Source of the DNA: Kudoa neothunni | Taxonomy: Eukaryota; Animalia; Cnidaria | Assembly: GCA_964304625.1 (NCBI GenBank) | Contig: OZ199840.1 | Location: 1,900,532-1,964,531 of the forward strand | DNA length: 64,000 nt | Direction of reading: 5' to 3' | Shown: piece after piece, positions 1 through 54,136 of the stretch | How the letters are laid out: the number at the start of each line of letters is the position of its first letter | How positions within the stretch are numbered: position 1 is the stretch's first letter | The notes under the pieces: generated by a model | What the model saw: the letters and a program-made list of their open reading frames with translations, nothing else | Database searches by the model: none | Told to the model about the DNA's origin: nothing | Program-made: the position numbers and the translations under genes

Positions 1-9
1 CTCTAATTT

Positions 10-3000
10 CTATTTTTCCAGTAACCAAAGTAAAAAACCAATTCCAATAAAAATGATAGCAGCTGGAATCACAACTGCAACAATTCTAAATGCAATAATT
101 AAAAAAGTAATTCCAGGTTACTTTACATCGAATTTTTAGATCTAAATAAATGTATAATGATATTCACGTATTAAAGTTACGTTGATTTATTCGAGGCTTC
201 ACCTATATTTATTAATAATATTCAAATTATTGAACATTTGATACAACAATAAAAATAAGCTACCCTGATTTATTTCCCCGATTCCATAGATACTTTCGTT
301 TCCACTAACAAATACCGCCAAATGATAATTGTTGATGTCTTCGACCTCGGTAATGGTGAATTCATTGCATGGAGGAAACACCCTACAACCTTCACCAACT
401 GTCATGCATTTTTTTATGATCGGATTAGACATATCCTCCGAATTTGTTAATTTCCATTTGCATAACGAATTTGAATTCACGCCTTCTGGTAGTATTGTTT
501 TTACATTTAAAGTTTTGTCAACACGTGTGATCACCACTGTTATTTCCTTTTTAGGGTCCGAAGGAGATTTGAGAAGTGGGTCTAATTTAACCTTCGTTAT
601 TAAACTAGTAAATTACATTTATAACATAATTCATTTATTAATAAATTTGGATAATTTTTTTCAAAAGGTATATTTATTCGTAAATAAAGATATAATTTTA
701 GATGAAACATTACTTTTAGGTATATCTATTGTAACTTCAATAGACCTGTCGACAGCCGTCACTAAAACCTGATATTCTTTTTCTGCTTCGTAACCTTCAC
801 TAAATACGATATTGCTACATAAAGGCAATGTTTGACAAGTAGGGATTCTGGTGTTGGTAGTTGTAGGTGTTACATTTGTTGATTGTTTGTCCGCCGATCT
901 AGCCACTCCTATTTTAGAGAGTATTGATTTTGCAGGAGCACTTCCAGTATTTACTACTGGAGGCGCAGCAGGGCATTCGTATATTGAATCATATGATACG
1001 CCTCTCTTAACTTTTATTTTGTAATGACAAACGGCCGTTGGATATGGCAATGATAATGAGCCTATCACTTGGAACCCTTTGTCCAAAAATTTCTTGTGAA
1101 GTGTAAGCGTTGACATTTCTTAATAATCATTTATTTAATTTCAAATAAGCATTTTGTTACTTGTAGTGATTTCATGAACTTTGAAGCCGTAACCAGTGTG
1201 TGCAACTACTTTGAGATCATACTCCGTTCCTGGACTTAATCCCACAATAGTTTGAGGTTCTCTACAATATCCTCGGCAAGGATAACTATCTGAACACATT
1301 GCACATACATAAACGTCCTTCCCTCTAGGACTAAGATAGTAAGCACAGGTGATATCTTCTTTGGAAGCTACGGCTGCAACCTCAAGTGCTTTTATAGTGA
1401 AACTTGTATCACGTATGGTTGGTGTAACGTCGGGAAATGTAGTTGCTCCGGCATTTTCTAAATAATTCTAAGCTTTTAATTAACGATTTATTTATACTTG
1501 TTCTGAAAAATATATGCTCTTTAAATCCAGAAGGAACTTTGTTAGAACCCGAGTCAGTCGCCGCTGCTTTAATTTCAAGAATATAAGGTTTTCCGCTTGG
1601 TAATTGTAATATTGTTAATGCTGCATTACACTCCTCAACACAATGTTGGTCACTAACAGAAGCAGTACATTTAGCTCTTGTAGTAACAGCAGTTGGCGTG
1701 GGTTTGTCAGCAGCGTAATAACTTACAGTGCATGTTGAAAATTTTGGCGCTGTAGATGGATTAAATAAATGCACATTTAATGTAACACCAGTAGATGAGT
1801 CAGCTGATAGTAATTCTCCAGAACTACCTTCAGCAATAGTTTCAGTAATCACTATATATATTTGATTAGATTATTATTATTCATTTAATACCAAATTTCT
1901 TTTGTTTGTAACCCTCGTAATCAGTACCAGCAGTATTTTTTTGTAGTGAGAAATGTCTTGTTTGTATCAATATTTCAACAACGCTTTTAGAATTTGTGAA
2001 AATAAGCTCCACATTATTGCATGGGGCAAAACATGGTTTCTCTGTCCCTCCACAATTCGACGTATATTCATTAGAAGAACTACTGCTAATTTGAGTTGAT
2101 ATTAGTTTAATTCCAAACCGACAAATTTCAAATGGGAATTTATTTGTGAATTTTAATAAGTATTTAGTTTTCTCGGTGTTGCTGTACGTCACATAATACT
2201 GTGGTATATAAACACCGGTGTTCATCAAAGTATATTTATTTTGCAGTTTATAAAAGAAACTTGGATAACCCGCGCATCTCATTTCATAATGTGGTATCAT
2301 TACATCAAATTCTACTTCATTGACACTATTATTCGCAGTGCAACTACCTCCAACTGTTCCTGCGGCATATTCAACATTCTTGTAATATATGGGGCATGCA
2401 ACTGGTTTACATGTTTTCGTATTTAATTTCAATTTTTTATCATCTGTAATACTAATTGTTACTTGCGGATTTACCAAAAGCGCTATAAAAGTTATTATAA
2501 ATAGTACAACAAGAGAAATTTACGTATTTCCAATCCAAAGACAGTTCCACCAGTGGTTTTTGCAGCGGCACCTGAAACGTCAGTTGCGTCAAAAATTGCG
2601 GCATATTTTGTTCTTGGAGAAAATTCGTTGAATGTTAATTTGTTATTTGTTCCAATGCATGTTATAACACACTTTCCATCTGTAGCACCGGTATTAGTTT
2701 CAGGACAAGGATTGATATCTTCGTATGCCGCACCAGCCTCATTTGACTTTTTAATGTAGCACTTGTTTGTAGAAGAGTAACTTCCTCCGCTTAATGTTAA
2801 ATGGATTTTTATATCACTACTCTCTTTAAAAAGTTTGTAAGATAGAGAGTTGGTTGTCGCTGCTGGAGCAGTGCTCCGTTGTTCTTCTGCATTTAGCAGG
2901 AAGAATTTGACTATTATCAATTTAAAAATTTTTTAAAGTAACGTAAATTTTTACAATTTAAGATAATAAAAATTCCAAGGAACCTTATAAAAGGATTCAT
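10..3000 (-). CDS. Cell-surface protein (about 836 aa): signal peptide, about 7 Cys-rich fibronectin-III-like modules, C-terminal TM/GPI-type hydrophobic tail
   Basis: Hand-spliced exons 3000-2955, 2910-2524, 2482-1892, 1851-1498, 1457-1161, 1118-714, 581-264, 202-181, 141-127, 85-10. All introns are GT-AG and the total is 2511 nt in frame. N-terminus MNPFIRFLGIFIILNFKFFLLNA. FN3 tyrosine-corner-like motifs GLSPGTEYDLKVVA, FSPRTKYAAIF and LPSGKPYILEI. C-terminus IIVAVVIPAAIIFIGIGFLLWLLEK*. The acceptor at 582 is the least certain junction. Confidence 0.8.
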
Positions 3001-3069
3001 TTTATTTAAGATAATCCATTCCGAAAATTTTTGTCCAATGCAATCAATCAAATAGCCTGTAATCAATGT

Positions 3070-3097
3070 ATTGTACCGAACAAGTGTTCGGTACAAT
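3070..3097. promoter_or_regulatory. Perfect 13-bp inverted repeat 70 bp upstream of the surface-protein ATG
   Basis: ATTGTACCGAACA-AG-TGTTCGGTACAAT. The palindrome is certain; a regulatory role is inferred from position only. Confidence 0.35.
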
Positions 3098-5499
3098 CAT
3101 AAAACTTAGTTTATAATCTTGCCTAAAAGATGTATAGTAACTAAAAAAATCGAAGATATGTTTATTGTCATATTAATTTAGAGGATGTATTTTTTCATTA
3201 TTAAAGTTACGATGCACAGTCAACTAAAAATTAATGAATTATTTAGTTTTTAAAGCTATCTGGATCCTAATTTTGAAGATTTACAATAATGAAATCATAG
3301 ATGGGTAATGTACGATGTGCATAAAATAATAAAATAACTGAGTCATTCAGAAAATTTTAAATATTAATTCAAATAATACCAAATGTATAATACTTTTCAG
3401 ATATTTCTTGTTTAATTAATGAAGTATTTTATTTGATAACCTAATGTGATATTGTTTCGACGGAAAACAAAAAATCTTAAAATAAAATCAATATTAAGTC
3501 GGATATAATGAAGTATAAAAGTAATTTATCAACACTTTGAGACAAATATTCGGTAAAAAAATACAACAAACAAACTGAAAACTAGAAATAAATCCAGGTT
3601 TGCATTTAGTGTGCGCAAATTTCATATTATTTTGGCGCGTAAATAAACAAAATATCATCAAGATCCTAACCACACGTCAGTATTTAGAAAACGCATCTAT
3701 TTAAATTCTAGACTCAATCAAACGTATTAATTTTCTAAAGTCTCAAAAAACCATCCTCAGAGGTCTTTTGGAGTCAAATTGAACCCAGATTGTTACTTAG
3801 CAAATTGGTTACAAAAATTGTTACAAACTCAATTTTCTTGTATTTTTCGTTTCTAACGACTAGGTTTCCAGTAAAACAATGTAACGTGTAAAATTAATAA
3901 AGGTAAATCATTTAAGTATCTATTCATATGCTATTAGCAAGTGATCGTAAGCATAAGTTATTGTTTAGTAATTAATTTATTGTTCAACATAATAAATACT
4001 TTTGGTTCTTCCGTTAGAAAATAATATTTGTATTTTAATTTTTTCAACAAAAACTTAATATATAACATAAATAAACAATTATTCTTTATTTTCACGAAGA
4101 CCATAATATTTTTTCTGTATGTTCTTGCCCTGAATTTTAACTAATTGTAGTCTCGTATTCAAATCTAATTGAGTGACTATCGATATGTGAATGTGGTGAA
4201 TTCAATGAAATCAAAGCTAGAATTATTAGAAAGCGTGCCCGACAACTGCTTTTTGGAATCATCAGAAGACTCATGCTAATCATTGGAGACAGGAGTAATT
4301 GGAAATTTGAATGTCAGTAAATATGGAATTGCTTATGATCTCTCAAGAAGGCGTCTCTTTCCACAACGACGATACATACGCAAGGAGTATAAGATTAATT
4401 CTATTTCCATTAGTTTTGTATTTATTAAGCGAATAACTAAATTTTAATCAATCGTGTTATCTTTTTATATTTTATTTTACAACAAAATTAATGAATACGA
4501 CTGATTCTAGCGCGTAAAAGCAAATTCTACAGCATAGAAAGAATTTAATGCTAGATAAGATTTATAAAATAAGTTATTAATTATAAATAGCTTTTTACTT
4601 TATTATTCATATTTATTTGTGGTAAAAAGCGTTTTGGAAAATGATTTCACTATTAGAGAAAACAAGTTATCAATGAGTCCTGACAACATGACTGATGATG
4701 TAATAATGGGTCATTTTTATGTTTTTTCTCCTTACAATAGAAAATGTTTGTTGGGATTCATAACTTTGATAATCTCATAATACCATTGACATCAAAGTTC
4801 AACTTTTTGTTCATTTTAAGTTGAACTATGTCAGGGTTATCAAAAGTGTGGACGCAATGTTTTGCGACCGTTCTTTATTTAGCACCAACTACCGTGTAAC
4901 CACCTACTAAAATTGGTAAAACTATCTGAGGTCAGTATAAAAACACCTATGATCCTCATGTAGGTTATAAAAAATAATTCAACCGACTCAAAACATAATG
5001 TTGCATCTGAATATGGTGAATATAATAAGGAACGGCGATGCATCAACTGACCCCCCTCCCCGCGTACATCGAATAAGATAATGGATAAAACTGTATTAAA
5101 TTCATTCAAATTCATAATAAAATCAACATTTATAAAAATAATAACTACGGAAAAAAGAGTTGACAGATAAATTATTGCATACTTTAACTAACTTAGTGGA
5201 AATGATTGTAGAAAATTCCGCTATTAACAACTAATTCAAACTTAGTTTTATTATGAAAGAAGTTAAAACTATAGGTAGGCCCAAGGTAATGAATAATTAT
5301 TTTGAATTTGATAAATAACGTCGTTATATCATTGTGGTATGTCGAAAAAAATGAATCATTTTGTTTGAAAAATTATTGCGGATTATTCGTTTTATAACAT
5401 ACAAAAATAACGGAAATAAAGTTAATCTTATAATATTCGCCCAAGCACCATTGTTGTGGAAAGAGACACTATCTCTCAAAATACCTCGAAAAAACCCAT

Positions 5500-10339: not shown

Positions 10340-10789
10340 TCATTCGCTGGTAGTGGAACGTCCACTTCCTTCATAAACTCCTGAATTATCCTGTAACCAT
10401 CCTTTCCAACCGGAATGGGACACGTCTTTCTCATCGAAATATAATTGCCGCACGCCTGACACATATTGTCCTTTTGATAGTGTAAGGTGTTGGTGAAGTT
10501 GGTTGGTTTTTTGTAGTGGTGCTGGTGTTTGATCGTCACCTTCGTTATCCTCATCTTCATCTGATTGGGCATTCTCCATGCTTGGTGCAATCAAATTGAT
10601 TGGGACAGCTTCCAGTGTTGAGTTTGATTGGTTCATCACCTTTTGGTTTGGTGACGCCGATATGGGCATAGTTGGCCCTCCACCGCCGCCAGGTGATTCG
10701 CTTGAAGATGACGTTTTTTGACGCTTGATCACACATCCCAAACAACAGCGAGCCAAACTCACCAAAAATACCAATCTTAGAATATCCAT
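10340..10789 (-). CDS. Orphan putative secreted protein (149 aa as one ORF; 3' end ambiguous)
   Basis: Signal-peptide-like MDILRLVFLVSLARCCLG, then KR, Ser/Gly tracts and acidic DEDEDNEGDD; coding-like composition. Confidence 0.55.
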   Translation of the reverse strand: MDILRLVFLVSLARCCLGCVIKRQKTSSSSESPGGGGGPTMPISASPNQKVMNQSNSTLEAVPINLIAPSMENAQSDEDEDNEGDDQTPAPLQKTNQLHQHLTLSKGQYVSGVRQLYFDEKDVSHSGWKGWLQDNSGVYEGSGRSTTSE

Positions 10790-18933: not shown

Positions 18934-21900
18934 TTAGTTGGAGGATTTATTGTTGCCATAGTTGTTATTGTGGTTGGTAGTTCTACGGAACTGGAATTGG
19001 CGATGATAGCCGTTGGATTTGCTTTGTTGGGGTTGCATATGTCCGAATTCTTCTTGATGAGTAGCCCAACAATTATCACAAAAATATTTGAGACAATCTC
19101 TATCCACACAAAAGTATTGTCCCATGGGTTGGTTGGAGTTGGTGTTGATGTTGTTATTGTTGTTGGCGTTGGAAGACGGCGCACTTCTGGAATTCATTTG
19201 AATTCCACAATCTTCACAGTGTTGGTCATCGGAGAAAAAAGGTTTGATTTCAACACGTTTTTCCATTCCACACAACTTTAAAGTGATAAAATGAGCCTCA
19301 AGTGCTTTAAGATAACACTGAGTGTTTCCAAAGGTGACACTTGCTGCTCCTTTGGGGTAGGAATACTCGAGATCAACATCGATTTCAACAAGATCCACTC
19401 CACCAAAACAATGGTTCATGTTGTCAAAGAGTTCACGCGCTTGAGCTTGACGAGGAATGCCACCAACAAAAACGGTTCGTTTGCATCGTGGTACTGGTTT
19501 TTCGATGGTGCTTCTTGGCGACCAAATGGCATCAGTAAGAGTCCATGGGCGTATTTGCACCTGTTTGCTTTCAGAGCGTTGACTGGAGACAGTCCAGAAG
19601 AATTTTTCATCCACCTTGGTGCAACGGTTGATCAGATTGACCACACTGTCCGCATGTTCAAACAACAGAAATGCGTATCCTTTGGGGGGAAGACCGGAGT
19701 TGCTGTCCAATTTGTGCGGCCAATCAACAACCAATTCGCCAAATCGTTTGAATTCAAGTGCAATCTGAGTTTCGGTGATATCTTGAGGAAGTCCTCCGAC
19801 AAACACTTTTCTTGAGAACACCTCTCTCTTGACAATATTGACAATAGTGGATTCGATTTTGTTATTATGATTAGTTGTGTGGGTGGCAACCTTATTTGTT
19901 GCCGCGGAATTGATGCTATTGTTGAAGTTATGTACCGGTGTAAGGGACTGTTGGCGAGGTCGCGGACTTTCAGATTGAGGTCGGAATTCGCACGCACTAT
20001 GTCTTGGAGATTGACGGAAACTGTACGCAGCGGATGCAGTAGTATACGAGGAGGTAGACGCAGCCGACATTCGTGTCAAAACAGATTCATGTGGTACCGG
20101 TGGTGAATCACTTTGGCACACGACGCAGAACGATTTCAAAGCACCATGCAAACACAACAAATTGTGCGAGGTGGATACTGTTGATTTCAGGTCAGGAAAA
20201 TCACGATCAATTGTCAGATCGGACAACGCATTCATTGCAGAGGCCACACCTTCATCAATCCGAGCTTGAATATCAGAACTATCACCCAACGATCTGGTTC
20301 GTGGACCATTATCAGATACTGAGTTGCGTTTGGAGCTGTCATGGATTGTTGGTGTGGTGGCATCGCCATCACCACTCTTAAACTTATATCTCCCAGCAGA
20401 AGGAACATTTCCATTTTGACTTCTTCTTCGCACAGTGGTGGGAGTGTTGATATTCGATGGGAGAGGAGTTTGATTGATCTGCTGTTGGAAATAGTGTATA
20501 TTTCTTGGGTTGGATCCAATTGGGCCGAACTCCATATTTCTATGATCCTCATCCGAACTGATAGACAAATCGATTGCACCGCGTCTGATGGAATCGTGCA
20601 AACGCTCATAATCGTTCGCATCGAAATCAACAGTTTTTTGTGAACTCAAATAGGGATCATTGGTTCTATAGTTGTGGATGGAGTTGTGTCTTGGTGAGTT
20701 GAAATGATTGCTTATAGAGTTTCGTTCGCTTTGAGATTCGACTATGTTTGGTCGGGATATTCCCGCCGAAGTACCTGCTGAATTGGCATTTGATGTATTC
20801 TCCGAGTCACCAACGCCCCCACTGGTCGTAAATATTTGGTGGCTGTTCGATTTGACCACCTGGGAACGACGGGGGTAGGAATTGAAACGTTCACCGGTTG
20901 CAGAAGTGTGTGCATGGTTACTACCACCATTGCCGTGGTAAGCATTTGCATGAGCGTTATGATAATTGTTGTTGGTTTGGGAGGAACGACCACCTTGTTT
21001 TTTCGAGGTATCAAATCCAGTTGCTCTAAGGATCTCATTCACGTCATCATTCTCCATCAAACAACTGCTGATTCCACCACCACCACGTTGCATCATTCCA
21101 TTTGAATCATGTAGAAAACTGTTGGCTGAAGATTTGGTTGCCATGACGATGGCCTTGTGATCTTTGGTAGATTGAGAGAGAATATTATTGATTTGTGTGC
21201 ACACATTCTCATTGCCGAACGCGGAGATTGTGGTTGTGTTGGCTACCGATAGCATTTCCGGGGTGATCACATCGGCTCCACCAATGAGCATGCTGTTACG
21301 ATGTACCATTTGGCTGTAACGACCACCGCCAGAGATATTGTGGGTGTTATTCGTGGTGGAACTGTGGCTGAAGTGCATCATGTTGTGTTGGCGTGAAGAT
21401 AGATGGTTATGGTTGGAAGTTCCAACATGCGGCGATATGGGCCGATTGCCGGCCATTGCATACTGAGTGTCGTATCCATAGCTGCCATTGTTCATAAAAA
21501 AACTGTGGTCAACGGAACCACTGTAGTAGGGGTTGGACGGGGAATGATGTGGAGGAGGAGGGGGAGGAGGAGGAGGAGGAGGCGGTGGTATTGATTGTTG
21601 ACCGCTGAAATGATGACTACCCATGGGGTTGTTAGGATGACGATGGGAACCTCCATTATTCATTATGGTTGGAGAAGTGTGATTGGGCGGTATATGACTC
21701 CCGTAATAATTAGGATTGTTGCTGTAATAATGAGTAGACCCATTGAAATTCATATTTTGGTGACTGAGAGGGTTGTGTTGTTGTAGATTGTTGTGGAAAT
21801 TGGATGGGTGTGAGCTGAGATGATTGTTCATAGCATTTGATTGAGATGGCGGTCCATTGTAGAAAAAGTTATCGTTTGTTCCACCCATATTGGACACATT

Positions 21901-22374
21901 GGACATATTAGATAATTGATTGTTATCTCGGCAATTTGCAGGATATGCATTCACGTTCATTGGATTATTATACGTTATGGCGGTGTTATTGGAATCAAGT
22001 GACTGTTGATAATTGAAAGTTTGGTTGGGATGCGAAAACACATTGTCCACAGAACCGGTGTTGGACAAATCAGGAAGAGAAACCTTTTCGGCTGGATCGG
22101 GCGTGGGAAGACCGGAGTCTACAGCAGCTTCAGTTATGATATCAGAAGTGGTGGTGGTAGGCGGTTGTGTGGTGTTTTCAACCAAGTCTCTACCATCCAC
22201 GATGTCACTTTCGTTAATTATCAGCTGTTCGTTGTTGGAGATGTTAGGAGATGGACTACTGGAATTGGTGGATAAATTTGGGGATGTTGGAGACTCAATC
22301 AACGGCTGACAATCAGCAGCACTGTTATCTTTACTTTGCTCATTAGATGGAACACTTATATCGTTGGAATCCAT
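18934..22374 (-). CDS. CPEB: Cytoplasmic polyadenylation element-binding protein, CPEB2-4/Orb2 subfamily, 1146 aa, single coding exon
   Basis: RRM1 FSRKVFVGGLP..VVDWPHK..PPKGYAFLLF..VQIRPW, RRM2 RTVFVGG..YPKGAASVTF..KRVEIKPF, ZZ finger CEDC..C..C..YFCDNCW..H..H. The N-terminal 850 aa are N/S/H/P-rich. Confidence 0.95.
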   Translation of the reverse strand: MDSNDISVPSNEQSKDNSAADCQPLIESPTSPNLSTNSSSPSPNISNNEQLIINESDIVDGRDLVENTTQPPTTTTSDIITEAAVDSGLPTPDPAEKVSLPDLSNTGSVDNVFSHPNQTFNYQQSLDSNNTAITYNNPMNVNAYPANCRDNNQLSNMSNVSNMGGTNDNFFYNGPPSQSNAMNNHLSSHPSNFHNNLQQHNPLSHQNMNFNGSTHYYSNNPNYYGSHIPPNHTSPTIMNNGGSHRHPNNPMGSHHFSGQQSIPPPPPPPPPPPPPHHSPSNPYYSGSVDHSFFMNNGSYGYDTQYAMAGNRPISPHVGTSNHNHLSSRQHNMMHFSHSSTTNNTHNISGGGRYSQMVHRNSMLIGGADVITPEMLSVANTTTISAFGNENVCTQINNILSQSTKDHKAIVMATKSSANSFLHDSNGMMQRGGGGISSCLMENDDVNEILRATGFDTSKKQGGRSSQTNNNYHNAHANAYHGNGGSNHAHTSATGERFNSYPRRSQVVKSNSHQIFTTSGGVGDSENTSNANSAGTSAGISRPNIVESQSERNSISNHFNSPRHNSIHNYRTNDPYLSSQKTVDFDANDYERLHDSIRRGAIDLSISSDEDHRNMEFGPIGSNPRNIHYFQQQINQTPLPSNINTPTTVRRRSQNGNVPSAGRYKFKSGDGDATTPTIHDSSKRNSVSDNGPRTRSLGDSSDIQARIDEGVASAMNALSDLTIDRDFPDLKSTVSTSHNLLCLHGALKSFCVVCQSDSPPVPHESVLTRMSAASTSSYTTASAAYSFRQSPRHSACEFRPQSESPRPRQQSLTPVHNFNNSINSAATNKVATHTTNHNNKIESTIVNIVKREVFSRKVFVGGLPQDITETQIALEFKRFGELVVDWPHKLDSNSGLPPKGYAFLLFEHADSVVNLINRCTKVDEKFFWTVSSQRSESKQVQIRPWTLTDAIWSPRSTIEKPVPRCKRTVFVGGIPRQAQARELFDNMNHCFGGVDLVEIDVDLEYSYPKGAASVTFGNTQCYLKALEAHFITLKLCGMEKRVEIKPFFSDDQHCEDCGIQMNSRSAPSSNANNNNNINTNSNQPMGQYFCVDRDCLKYFCDNCWATHQEEFGHMQPQQSKSNGYHRQFQFRRTTNHNNNYGNNKSSN

Positions 22375-51655: not shown

Positions 51656-54136
51656 CCCTCTAATGGGCTTGGGGTCTTTTAGACCCCAAAACGATTTTAA
51701 TTTGTCCATAGAATCTTTTATAATTATCTGGGATACTTAAAATTTCGTCAATTCTCCTAAATTATTTTAATAAATAGATTTATAAAAATCTTTATGTGGA
51801 ATATTGATTATTTCTTATCGAACAAAATTTTTATCTTCTAACGGGCTTTGAGGTAAAAAAGACCCCAGATTTTTTTTGATTTGACGTATGTAGAAAATTA
51901 TTATAAGATGATTTGGAAATTTAAAAAAAAATCTGCCTAATAAATACTGTCAAATTCAGCAATTATTAATCAATATAATCCGCCGTAATCCGATTAAGTA
52001 TGTAATCGCAACATATCGTAACCATCGTTTATATGAATACCGCAAGGTCAATGTTTATTAGCTAAATACAAACAAAATTAACATATTACCTCCGTGTACT
52101 AGCAATAAATAATCCCCTACAAAATAAGCTATAGATAATTTAAGCCTTAGGACCGTATATGAGAGTTAACGCGAAATATACACCAATTTTATCGTTTGTT
52201 GCGCACATTGAGATAATCATGGCACCATCTGAGGATTTTAGCGATGAATATCAACCTTTAAGTAGCGACATTGATGAAACCGTTCTTGAATATTCCGAAG
52301 AATCCGATGATACATCAGATTGCGAACAACCTGCGGATTCTACGACAAGCAAAAGCGGAATACTTTGGACATTGAATAAGCCACCTCCATCAAAAATGCT
52401 GAAGGAGAATATCATGAATCCTCGACCTGGGCCAACAGCTTATTGCATACAAAGAGTCAAAAACGTGTTGGACTGTTTTTTTATATTCTTCACTGATGAA
52501 ATTTGCCAGGAAATAATAAAACAAACAAACAAACGTTCACGGGAAATTACACTTTTCTGATTTATGGAATGATTTAGACGACGTTGAATTAAGAGGATTT
52601 TTCGGAACACTAATTTTGATGGCTGTCTACAAAGACAGAGAGCAACCTCTTTTAGAAATGTTTAGTATAAAGGAAGGGAGAGAGATGTATCGCGAAATCT
52701 TTTCATTTAATCGTTTTCGCCAAATTCTACGATGTATTCATTTTGATAATCCAAGCACCAGATCTGAAAGAAGAGAATTGGATAAATTTTGTCCAATTCG
52801 CAACATATGGATCCAGACTCTACCTATATGTTTTTTCCCCGGTGAAAATGTCACCGTTGACGAGCAGTTAGTCTCGTTTAGAGGAAGATGCTCATTTAGA
52901 CAATATATGCCGATGAAGCCGGCGAAATATGGCCTAAAGTTTTTCCTAGCAGTCGATCCAGTCCACAAATATGTTGTAAACATTTCTCCCTATCTAGGAA
53001 AGAGCGGAACTCAAGCTAGCCAAAACTATGGTGTTGGTGAGAATATTGTGCTTTCCTTTACAGCTCCCTTGTATAACTCAGGAAGAACTATAGTTGCAGA
53101 TAATTTTTTCTCTTCCCTTAGACTAGCCGAGAAGCTGTTAGACAAACGTCTGACATATCTTGGAACAATTCGACACAATAAGAGAGATTTACCACCGTGT
53201 GTTCTTCCGTCTAGAAATCGTTCCTTATTCAGCACTATGTTTATATTTTTTGATAAATATATGATCACTTCATATGTCAACAAAAAAAGAAGAGCAGTGA
53301 TTCTCCTATCCTCAGGAACAACCAACACCAACATAACCAACGATACACATAAACAAAAGCCTGAAACAATAGTGGATTATAATGGTTCCAAAGGAGGAGT
53401 AGATACCGTGGATCGGATGTTGGCTTCCGTTTCGGTCCGCAGATTTAATCGACGCTGGCCCATGGTGGTCTTTTATAATATGTTGGATTTGACTTTGATA
53501 AATTCATTTTGTCTATATAAACACATATTTAACGATTCCACAAAATTGAGACGTGATTTTCTGAAAGAAATGGCTGGAGAGTTGTATAAACCTCTTTTGG
53601 AGAGAAATTCCCAAATGAAAAAATGTTCAAAAAGATCTCATTCAACTTCTATGGAAACATACAACTTTGCAGATTCAAATACTTCTAAACGAAGATGTGA
53701 ACATTGTCCTCGTGAAAACGATAAGAAAACCTCATCCAAATGCTCAAAATGTGGAAGTTTCTACTGTCGCGCCCATTCGTCAAATAAATGTCTAAATTGC
53801 TAGCTAATATAAACCAAATTTATTAGGGACCCTTGAAAATATTTTATCTTTTATTTTTTACTAAAATGTTATTTTTCATTATTTCAAATAAGACTAAACA
53901 TATTATACGTTATAAAAACGATTTATCGCGATATCTGCTTAATCTTGCCGAGAGGATTACTGAAGATTAATTATGAAGTAATTGATTATTTTCTCAGCGT
54001 TACTTAGGCAGAATTTTCCCATATTTCCCTCATAAGTTTATAATAATTTTCTGCATACATTAAATTAAAAAAAATCTGGGGTCTTTTTTACCCCAAAGCC
54101 CGTTGGAGGGTGGTCGTTTTTTCATCCGTTGGATGG
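51656..54136 (+). mobile_element. Full-length piggyBac transposon
   Basis: TTAA TSDs at 51652-51655 and 54137-54140, CC...GG termini, and subterminal repeats at about 51656, 51835 and (inverted) 54075. Confidence 0.92.
52219..53803 (+). pseudogene. piggyBac transposase with one frameshift (about 526 aa if repaired)
   Basis: TVDEQL, YMPMKPAKYGLK, VADNFF, GTIR.N, YN..KGGVD, RRWP and a C-terminal Cys-rich domain. Frameshift at (AAAC)4, 52519-52534. Confidence 0.9.

Follow-up and report, generated by a model that had tools for sequence, protein, structure and literature searches.

Fibronectin type III (FN3) domains, as found in fibronectin, neogenin, titin, Dscam and Eph receptors (Pfam PF00041), are seven-strand beta-sandwiches of about 100 residues that are often encoded one per phase 1-1 exon and strung in chains on a single-pass anchor, and canonical FN3 domains have no conserved cysteines in strand C and the C'-E region. 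Class I/II cytokine receptors contain a tandem FN3 pair with conserved disulfides, and class I members also have a WSXWS motif in the second domain and a cytoplasmic box1/box2 region. Among parasites, large families of variant surface proteins (Giardia VSPs, Plasmodium var/rif/stevor, trypanosome VSGs and Pneumocystis MSGs) comprise hundreds of paralogues in tandem arrays, with pseudogenes and mosaic gene conversion between neighbours, and combine a cysteine-rich ectodomain with a minimal conserved C-terminal anchor and tail. In cnidarians, the clustered allorecognition (Alr) genes of Hydractinia encode single-pass proteins with divergent V-set-like Ig domains, one per exon and recognisable by structure rather than by sequence, together with cytoplasmic signalling motifs. 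In this study, we examined a gene in the tuna-muscle parasite Kudoa neothunni, located in a 64,000-nucleotide stretch of DNA (hereafter the window; GCA_964304625.1, contig OZ199840.1, positions 1,900,532 to 1,964,531 of the forward strand). An earlier note, made from the sequence alone, had claimed that this gene encodes an unrecognised four-cysteine, FN3-like repeat module on a membrane-anchored protein, and had proposed that the protein is a disulfide-stapled coat or adhesin. A literature search found no paper linking myxozoans with fibronectin type III.

The gene occupies positions 10-3000 of the window on the minus strand and was modelled as ten exons encoding 840 codons, with the following features:

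2943..3000 (-), exon 1: start codon and hydrophobic signal-peptide core (MNPFIRFLGIFIILNCKNL; mean hydropathy 1.12), with the likely cleavage site early in exon 2, after LLNA; the GT-AG intron 2942-2911 restores the frame.
2524..2910 (-), exon 2, phase 1-1: module 1, the membrane-distal one; Cys at 50/68/80/84 and an FSPRTKY corner.
1892..2482 (-), exon 3, phase 1-1: a 196-aa double module (modules 2 and 3) with eight conserved Cys at 24/29/47/69 and 120/143/150/154; the most conserved part of the family.
1498..1851 (-), exon 4, phase 1-1: module 4; Cys at 40/61/70/74 and an LPSGKPY corner.
1161..1457 (-), exon 5, phase 1-1: module 5; Cys at 37/(51)/54/60/64, with the signature TCAYY..x..C.DSYPCRG.C...I.GL.PGTEYDLKVVAH.
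714..1118 (-), exon 6, phase 1-1: module 6; Cys at 30/48/94/100, with a 45-residue Thr/Pro/Ser-rich insert between Cys 2 and Cys 3.
264..581 (-), exon 7, phase 1-1: module 7, the membrane-proximal one; Cys at 40/58/65/71.
181..202 (-), exon 8: a 22-nt micro-exon encoding part of the stalk (GEASNKS..).
127..141 (-), exon 9: a 15-nt micro-exon encoding part of the stalk (..TSKNS).
10..85 (-), exon 10: predicted transmembrane helix (IIVAVVIPAAIIFIGIGFLLWLL; mean hydropathy 2.30), a two-residue tail (EK) and the stop codon.

All introns were GT-AG and of 32-132 nt, and all six module exons were multiples of three. Both micro-exons, with their flanking splice sites, were conserved in all nine paralogues aligned. 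To seek transcript support, reads from three metatranscriptomic runs labelled with the species were aligned to window 1-3200, but none matched; because this is no test unless the parasite is shown to be present in those runs, the splice junctions are supported only by conservation.

The observation made in the earlier note was confirmed. The motifs that it listed were all found in the minus-strand translation: KCYIKK in exon 2; ICRFGI and CGGTEKPCFAPC in exon 3; TCTVSY and CTASVSDQHCVEEC in exon 4; TCAYYL and CAMCSDSYPCRGYC in exon 5; VCHYKI in exon 6; and LCKWKL and CMTVGEGCRVFPPC in exon 7. Six modules shared the pattern C-x17-22-C-x6-11-C-x3-5-C (with 45 residues in the middle spacing in exon 6), followed 13-17 residues later by the tyrosine of an L.P...Y-type corner, whereas the N-terminal half of exon 3 had a different spacing. 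To exclude the possibility that this pattern arose by chance, cysteine conservation was examined in paralogues of 37-87% identity. All these cysteines were kept in 90-100% of the sampled paralogues, and all but two of them in every one (23/23 in the family alignment A2; 21/21 in A3, with one cysteine at 19/21; 11/11 for exon 2; and 11/11 for exon 7, with one at 10/11). Three points of the note required correction. The spliced product is 840 aa by our exon coordinates rather than 836 aa, and exon 3 is a double module, so that the ectodomain has seven modules. Moreover, failure of the modules to align with each other had been named in advance as a result that would refute the proposal, and profile-profile comparison (hhalign) between the family alignments of exons 2, 3N, 3C, 5 and 7 indeed gave no significant similarity (P 0.017-0.38). 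We therefore do not claim sequence-level homology between module types; what they share is the cysteine pattern, the F-strand motif and the predicted fold, and a common origin of the modules rests on pattern and fold.

All searches were made exon by exon, and the predicted fold was assessed with models of exons 5 and 3. The AlphaFold model of the exon-5 module (pLDDT 85.5) had six strands of three or more residues in FN3 order plus a two-residue first strand. All top Foldseek hits in the PDB (probability 1.00, TM 0.54-0.68) and in the ESM Atlas (TM 0.63-0.70) were FN3 domains (TM 0.55-0.70 overall), although identity to any solved FN3 was only 14-22%. The exon-3 model (pLDDT 72.8) comprised two beta-sandwich domains: residues ~80-196 matched FN3 domains (Z 6.0-6.6, rmsd about 3 A over 80-88 residues), residues 1-78 matched Ig-like sandwiches, and the whole model matched tandem FN3 pairs. 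At the sequence level, however, the Pfam gathering threshold for fn3 (25 bits) was not reached. Exon 5 scored 18.6 bits (E 0.0023; residues 69-92 only), exon 2 gave a 15.5-bit hit to NDNF FN3, the other modules had no fn3 hit even at E<=10, and none of 21 exon-3 sequences hit fn3. The same Pfam scan of all six module exons at E<=10 listed no apicomplexan 6-Cys (s48/45) or other described parasite surface-antigen domain. The tyrosine corner was present in exon 2 (FSPRTKY), exon 4 (LPSGKPY) and exon 5 (LSPGTEY) but degenerate in exons 6 and 7, and the exon-5 module lacked the B-strand tryptophan of FN3. The A2 profile hit the E-F strand region of titin, fibronectin and contactin FN3 domains, sharing with them the strand motif and its corner (L.PGTEY.L.V.A); PDB profile searches gave only weak F-strand hits. 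For exon 3, Pfam on 21 members, the PDB profile search and ESM Atlas features (best score 0.79) gave nothing usable. A profile search of 1.84 billion proteins found full-module matches only in unnamed metagenomic ORF fragments and no named relatives, and the exon-3 profile found a single unnamed 191-aa ENA fragment. The modules differ from canonical FN3 in carrying four conserved cysteines in strand C and the C'-E region.

This gene was not a single odd gene, as the earlier note had not recognised, but one member of a family of at least about 225 copies. The exon-3 signature P-x-Y-E-x2-C-x3-P occurred 225 times in the genome, compared with 2 in the control. Every module type gave at least 150 genomic hits, in tandem arrays on all three chromosomes that were not confined to chromosome ends: at least 150 for exon 2 (from 275 candidates), exon 4, exon 5 (from 445) and exon 7 (from 305), whereas for exon 3 the 150 hits, from 475 candidates, were all at least 48% identical with E<=1e-52. 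Open frames were kept in nearly all of the 150 hits per module at 35-100% identity, and more than 90% of these best hits had no stop, but some copies carried several stop codons and transposon remnants lay between copies. Collinear paralogues were found, one example being G000:C2:9795149-9797742 (contig and positions in the assembly searched), with exons 2, 3, 4, 5 and 7 in order. Moreover, exon 5, exon 6 (E 1.5e-5), exon 7 (E 7.8e-11) and the transmembrane exon lay in the same order in L034, a Logan contig from another organism, at about 34% identity and GC 24%.

The C terminus was examined in more detail because the tail-less hydrophobic end could suggest a GPI anchor. Paralogues read ...GIGFYFGYWKNRN*, with a 4-5-residue K-N-R-N tail, and a YFGYWKTRN-like ending was also present in L034. 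Conservation of this basic ending (YFGYWK-N/T-RN) after the hydrophobic stretch points to a retained transmembrane helix and makes a GPI anchor unlikely. The copy in the window had a one-base insertion in its last exon relative to all paralogues, a frameshift that may be an assembly error or the start of decay.

The tandem paralogue 8.4 kb away was a mosaic. Identity was 86% in exon 1, 78% in intron 1, 82% in exon 2, 83% in intron 2, 96% in exon 3 and 84.5% in exon 4, and 93-100% from intron 4 to the last exon (99% in exon 6); the introns flanking exon 4 were 97.5% and 100% identical. The dS was 0.48 in exon 2 and 0.41 in exon 4 but 0.05-0.11 elsewhere, and dN/dS was 0.06-0.41 (0.30 in exon 4). 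This pattern suggests patchy gene conversion. Neither copy's exon 4 had a closer relative elsewhere in the assembly, so a simple copy-in from an extant third gene was rejected, and the high dS (0.41) also argues against pure positive selection.

Taken together, these data lead us to favour, with moderate confidence, the view that the gene encodes an 840-aa type I membrane protein with a signal peptide, seven beta-sandwich modules of predicted FN3 fold, a short Ser/Asn/Lys stalk, one transmembrane helix and almost no cytoplasmic tail. In this view, the four-cysteine pattern of six modules probably makes two disulfides in the C/C'-E region, and the family, possibly of 300-475 copies and arranged mainly in tandem arrays, would have grown by whole-gene duplication, because each position in the chain is its own conserved module type, with neighbouring copies exchanging sequence by patchy gene conversion that leaves some exons divergent. 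The most likely role would be that of a structural, ligand-binding ectodomain displayed on the parasite's plasma membrane, acting as a coat or adhesin at the host interface, with copy-to-copy variation supplying diversity; with so short a tail, it cannot signal by itself. The earlier interpretation was partly supported: our analyses support FN3-like beta-sandwiches by predicted structure, conserved cysteines, the absence of a described family in the databases searched, and a signal peptide with a C-terminal hydrophobic helix, whereas disulfide formation, expression, surface location, ligand binding and the coat or adhesin function are inferences. Two observations also weigh against this reading. 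Only three N-x-S/T sequons were found in the ectodomain, few for a glycoprotein coat, and the most conserved part, exon 3, lies near the distal end, which fits a conserved binding function better than a purely variable coat.

Other explanations were considered. It is possible, although less likely, that the family mediates cell-cell adhesion or recognition inside the parasite, given that myxozoan plasmodia hold cells within cells and spores are built from several cell types. Chains of FN3 or Ig modules on a single-pass anchor are the usual build of metazoan adhesion molecules, the conserved double module could be a homophilic or conserved-partner interface, and dN/dS was below 1 everywhere; yet hundreds of tandem copies with pseudogenes are unusual for housekeeping adhesion, there is no cytoplasmic tail to link to the cytoskeleton, and no relatives appeared in other animals in the profile search. 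A role as a spore component (valve surface or polar-capsule apparatus) laid down in bulk, with copy number serving dosage rather than diversity, seems unlikely. Very high copy number and the resemblance, no more, to the disulfide-rich extracellular modules of tough cnidarian capsule and spore structures (minicollagens and NOWA) favour it, but copies differ by 40-60% in sequence, which does not suit a dosage family, the conserved anchor and K-N-R-N tail argue for membrane display, and no similarity to known capsule proteins was seen in Pfam.

A cytokine-receptor-type protein capturing host ligands through exon 3 is very unlikely. Foldseek ranked the common gamma chain, IL-17RA, IL-7R-alpha and other two-domain cytokine receptors first for the exon-3 model, and the first half has four conserved Cys, as does domain 1 of class I receptors. 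However, these matches were weak (E about 1e-3, TM 0.23-0.35, 7-12% identity) and reflect any tandem FN3 pair, since integrin beta-4 and fibronectin pairs scored alike; moreover, no WSXWS motif appeared in exon 3 or its 20 paralogues, there was no sequence-level match, and there is no box1/box2 motif or cytoplasmic domain. Most doubtful is the reading that the family is a repeated, mostly non-functional DNA element, counted among the repeats of the published assembly, and not a set of working genes. The published annotation has only 5,316 genes and 45.6% repeats (PMC12239612), and the stop codons in some copies, the transposon remnants and the lack of matching RNA reads would agree with it, but the mostly open frames, the low dN/dS, the conserved cysteines, splice sites and micro-exons, and the architecture retained in another organism all argue against it.

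Compared with the variant surface-protein families, the Kudoa family shares high copy number, tandem arrays, pseudogenes and a mosaic identity pattern between neighbours, as well as a cysteine-rich ectodomain with a minimal anchor; its short basic tail recalls the conserved five-residue tail of Giardia VSPs. It differs in fold, has no sequence relation to them, belongs to an animal, and has arrays that are not confined to chromosome ends. Compared with Alr, it is likewise a clustered cnidarian family of divergent beta-sandwich domains, but it is FN3-like, tail-less and far larger. A tentative and rather unlikely possibility is that Kudoa, and probably other myxozoans, run a protist-style variant surface system built from an animal domain, in which hundreds of FN3-like coat genes would be expressed a few at a time and reshuffled by exon-scale gene conversion, letting a cnidarian parasite vary its host-facing surface.

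Myxozoans are economically important fish parasites whose genomes are described as extremely reduced, and how they persist in hosts is largely unknown. A family of at least about 225 genes for cysteine-bearing FN3-like membrane proteins would be equivalent to 4% or more of the 5,316 published gene models for K. neothunni, and part of it may be hidden in what was counted as repeats. It would be the obvious candidate for the host interface, for diagnostics or vaccine antigens, and for testing whether an animal parasite has evolved antigenic variation. It would also add a four-cysteine variant to the FN3 fold.

Scans of the window for tRNA genes and Rfam families returned no hits. The assembly comprised 40.26 Mb in contigs of 17.15, 12.04 and 11.05 Mb plus one of 18 kb, and a (TAAACC)n array sat at exactly one chromosome end, both in agreement with the published assembly (PMC12239612).

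To define the structure of the gene, the minus strand was read and a gene model of ten exons was obtained. The exons, in window coordinates, are as follows:

3000-2943, minus strand, exon 1: start codon and signal-peptide core
2910-2524, minus strand, exon 2: module 1
2482-1892, minus strand, exon 3: modules 2 and 3
1851-1498, minus strand, exon 4: module 4
1457-1161, minus strand, exon 5: module 5
1118-714, minus strand, exon 6: module 6
581-264, minus strand, exon 7: module 7
202-181, minus strand, exon 8: 22-nt micro-exon (stalk)
141-127, minus strand, exon 9: 15-nt micro-exon (stalk)
85-10, minus strand, exon 10: transmembrane helix, tail and stop codon

All introns were found to be GT-AG and 32-132 nt long, and exons 2-7 are each a multiple of three and start in phase 1. 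The total is 2523 nt, or 840 codons plus the stop, which is close to the 836 residues proposed in the earlier note. The predicted product comprises a signal peptide (MNPFIRFLGIFIILNCKNL, likely cleaved after LLNA in exon 2), seven modules, a GEASNKSTSKNS stalk, a 23-residue hydrophobic helix, and the tail EK. All searches and structure predictions described here were carried out exon by exon rather than on the joined protein.

The observation made in the earlier note, that the modules share a cysteine pattern, was confirmed, and every motif that it singled out is present. Six modules share C-x17-22-C-x6-11-C-x3-5-C, with 45 residues in the second gap of exon 6, and a tyrosine-corner motif follows. 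In family alignments, all these cysteines were kept in 90-100% of sampled paralogues at 37-87% identity, and all but two of them were kept in every one. Exon 3 has eight conserved cysteines, and its AlphaFold model (pLDDT 72.8) consists of two beta-sandwich domains. Residues ~80-196 of this model matched FN3 domains (leptin receptor FnIII, fibronectin modules) at Z 6.0-6.6, residues 1-78 matched Ig-like sandwiches, and the whole model matched tandem FN3 pairs. The exon-5 module, when modelled with 23 paralogues, gave a pLDDT of 85.5 and matched only FN3 domains, both in the PDB (neogenin, EphA4, monobodies, and Dscam; probability 1.00, TM 0.54-0.68) and in the ESM Atlas (TM 0.63-0.70). Language-model features also pointed to fn3. 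At the sequence level, however, Pfam fn3 reached only 18.6 bits against a 25-bit cut-off, and the different module types were not significantly similar to each other. The description "FN3-like with conserved cysteines" is therefore right, and the term "repeat" is right in the sense of a repeated fold and pattern, but not of recent internal duplication.

We next examined how often these modules occur in the genome assembly (denoted G000, with chromosomal contigs C1, C2, and C3; the window is G000:C3:1900532-1964531). Each module type searched found at least 150 scored places in the genome, and the first-look candidates numbered 445 for exon 5, 305 for exon 7, 275 for exon 2, 475 for exon 3, and 291 for exon 4. 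Exon 3 is the best conserved, in that all 150 hits were at least 48% identical, with E<=1e-52. Moreover, an exact degenerate pattern for its P-x-Y-E-x2-C-x3-P signature occurred 225 times, compared with 2 for the reversed control, which provides a firm lower bound for the size of the family. Hits were collinear, as in C2:9795149-9797742, which carries exons 2, 3, 4, 5, and 7 in order, and they formed same-strand arrays, with eleven copies lying between C2:9,785,253 and 9,869,202. A few copies had an exon-3 homologue carrying three to five stop codons (G000:C3:4893824-4894408, C3:921562-922137, C2:6589807-6590385, and C1:3269918-3270511), and are likely pseudogenes within the arrays. Given that each chain position is its own conserved type, the family expanded by whole-gene duplication.

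To search for relatives elsewhere, a profile of the exon-5 module was compared with 1.84 billion representative proteins. Full-length module matches were found only in unnamed 61-140-aa ORF fragments from ENA and Logan assemblies, and all of these keep the four cysteines. The long hits were ordinary multi-FN3 proteins that matched only profile positions ~60-90, corresponding to the E-F strands. A word search with the exon-3 profile found a single fragment. Short contigs from metagenomic or host sequencing data (L033, L036, and L057 from ENA ERZ28624939, and L034 and L035 from Logan SRR33849685 and SRR31175926) carry exon-per-module genes of the same family at 30-45% identity, and come from one or more AT-rich eukaryotes. 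Contig L034 (SRR33849685, GC 24%) carries homologues of exon 5, exon 6, exon 7, and a transmembrane exon ending YFGYWKTRN, in the same order at about 34% identity. L035 carries family exons next to a housekeeping-type gene that is 30% identical to its single K. neothunni counterpart. At least one other AT-rich eukaryote thus has the family; most likely it is another myxozoan, although this remains presumptive. In the literature library searched, no paper contained both "myxozoan" and "fibronectin type III". The K. neothunni genome paper does not mention fibronectin, surface proteins, or expansions (PMC12239612), and a 2026 Sphaerospora preprint reports other candidate surface families, but not this one.

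The tandem paralogue located 8.4 kb away has the same ten exons, and the DNA identity between the two genes was found to be a mosaic. Identity was 53% in the 5' flank, 86% in exon 1, 78% in intron 1, 82% in exon 2, 83% in intron 2, 96% in exon 3, 97.5% in intron 3, 84.5% in exon 4, 100% in intron 4, 97-100% from exon 5 to exon 9, and 93% in exon 10. Synonymous divergence was 0.41-0.48 in exons 2 and 4, and 0.05-0.11 in the others; dN/dS was 0.06-0.41. When exon 4 (window 1498-1851) was compared with its counterpart (G000:C3:1893638-1893991), the amino-acid differences clustered near the N-terminus, in the Cys2-Cys4 loop, and near the C-terminus. Neither copy's exon 4 has a closer relative elsewhere in the assembly. 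The simplest reading, which is an inference, is that the two genes are old duplicates whose 3' two-thirds were homogenised by gene conversion, and that exon 4 escaped or was kept different. Between the two tandem genes (G000:C3:1896878-1899269, or 2879-5270 of sequence L032), broken ORFs of 80-241 aa lie on both strands. One has a sub-threshold DUF4371 match (25.1 bits, E 1.8e-5), as found in hAT-type transposase relatives, and this region is probably a decayed transposon.

The membrane anchor was also examined. The micro-exons, their splice sites, and the last exon were conserved in nine paralogues, and the paralogues end in GIGFYFGYWKNRN followed by the stop codon. Relative to all nine paralogues aligned, the window copy has one extra T in a T-run (window 25-40, minus strand, last exon), by which the conserved ending GFYFGYWKNRN becomes GFLLWLLEK. 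From there the window copy reads GIGFLLWLLEK and stop; it is still hydrophobic and still terminated, but lacks the conserved ending. This may be a real frameshift or a homopolymer error in the assembly. The conserved basic ending, which is also present in the other organism, argues for a retained transmembrane helix rather than a cleaved GPI signal.

Taken together, these data establish the architecture of the gene, the predicted fold of two exons, the conservation of the cysteines, purifying selection, the size of the family, and the mosaic identity between neighbours. That the cysteines form disulfides, that the protein sits in the plasma membrane with the chain outside, and that it acts as a coat or adhesin are all inferred. 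The interpretation in the earlier note, a disulfide-stapled, membrane-anchored coat or adhesin, is partly supported. No read from three RNA runs labelled with the species mapped to the gene, but this is no test of expression. The tail is too short to signal. We hold the structural description with high confidence, whereas the host-facing coat or adhesin role remains tentative, and parasite-internal adhesion, spore structure, a cytokine-receptor-like binder, and inert repeats are the competing explanations. Both the fold and the idea of a large surface family are already known. What is new is a four-cysteine FN3 variant with no family model, expanded to hundreds of copies in a cnidarian parasite whose genome is otherwise strongly reduced.

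The assembly comprises 40,260,978 bp in contigs of 17.15, 12.04, and 11.05 Mb plus one of about 18 kb. A (TAAACC)n array was found at exactly one chromosome end (G000:C2:12039536-12040069), with 85 overlapping matches and none elsewhere in the genome. The published curated K. neothunni assembly, obtained from yellowfin tuna data, has 40.2 Mb, a scaffold N50 of 12.0 Mb, three chromosomes, a circular mitochondrial genome, and a (TAAACC)n telomere at one end (PMC12239612). The window itself is AT-rich eukaryotic DNA (GC about 0.30), and scans of it revealed no tRNA or Rfam feature. It also carries metazoan genes (the CPEB-type gene and the piggyBac-type ORF below) and a further ORF:

10340-10789, minus strand: a 149-aa ORF with a hydrophobic, cysteine-containing N-terminus (MDILRLVFLVSLARCCLGC) and an acidic, low-complexity remainder, which has no Pfam match and may be another secreted orphan
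18934-22374, minus strand: a 1146-aa intron-free gene for a CPEB-type RNA-binding protein (RRM_7 plus the CPEB ZZ domain)
52616-53803, plus strand: a piggyBac-type transposase ORF (DDE_Tnp_1_7, E 1e-57)
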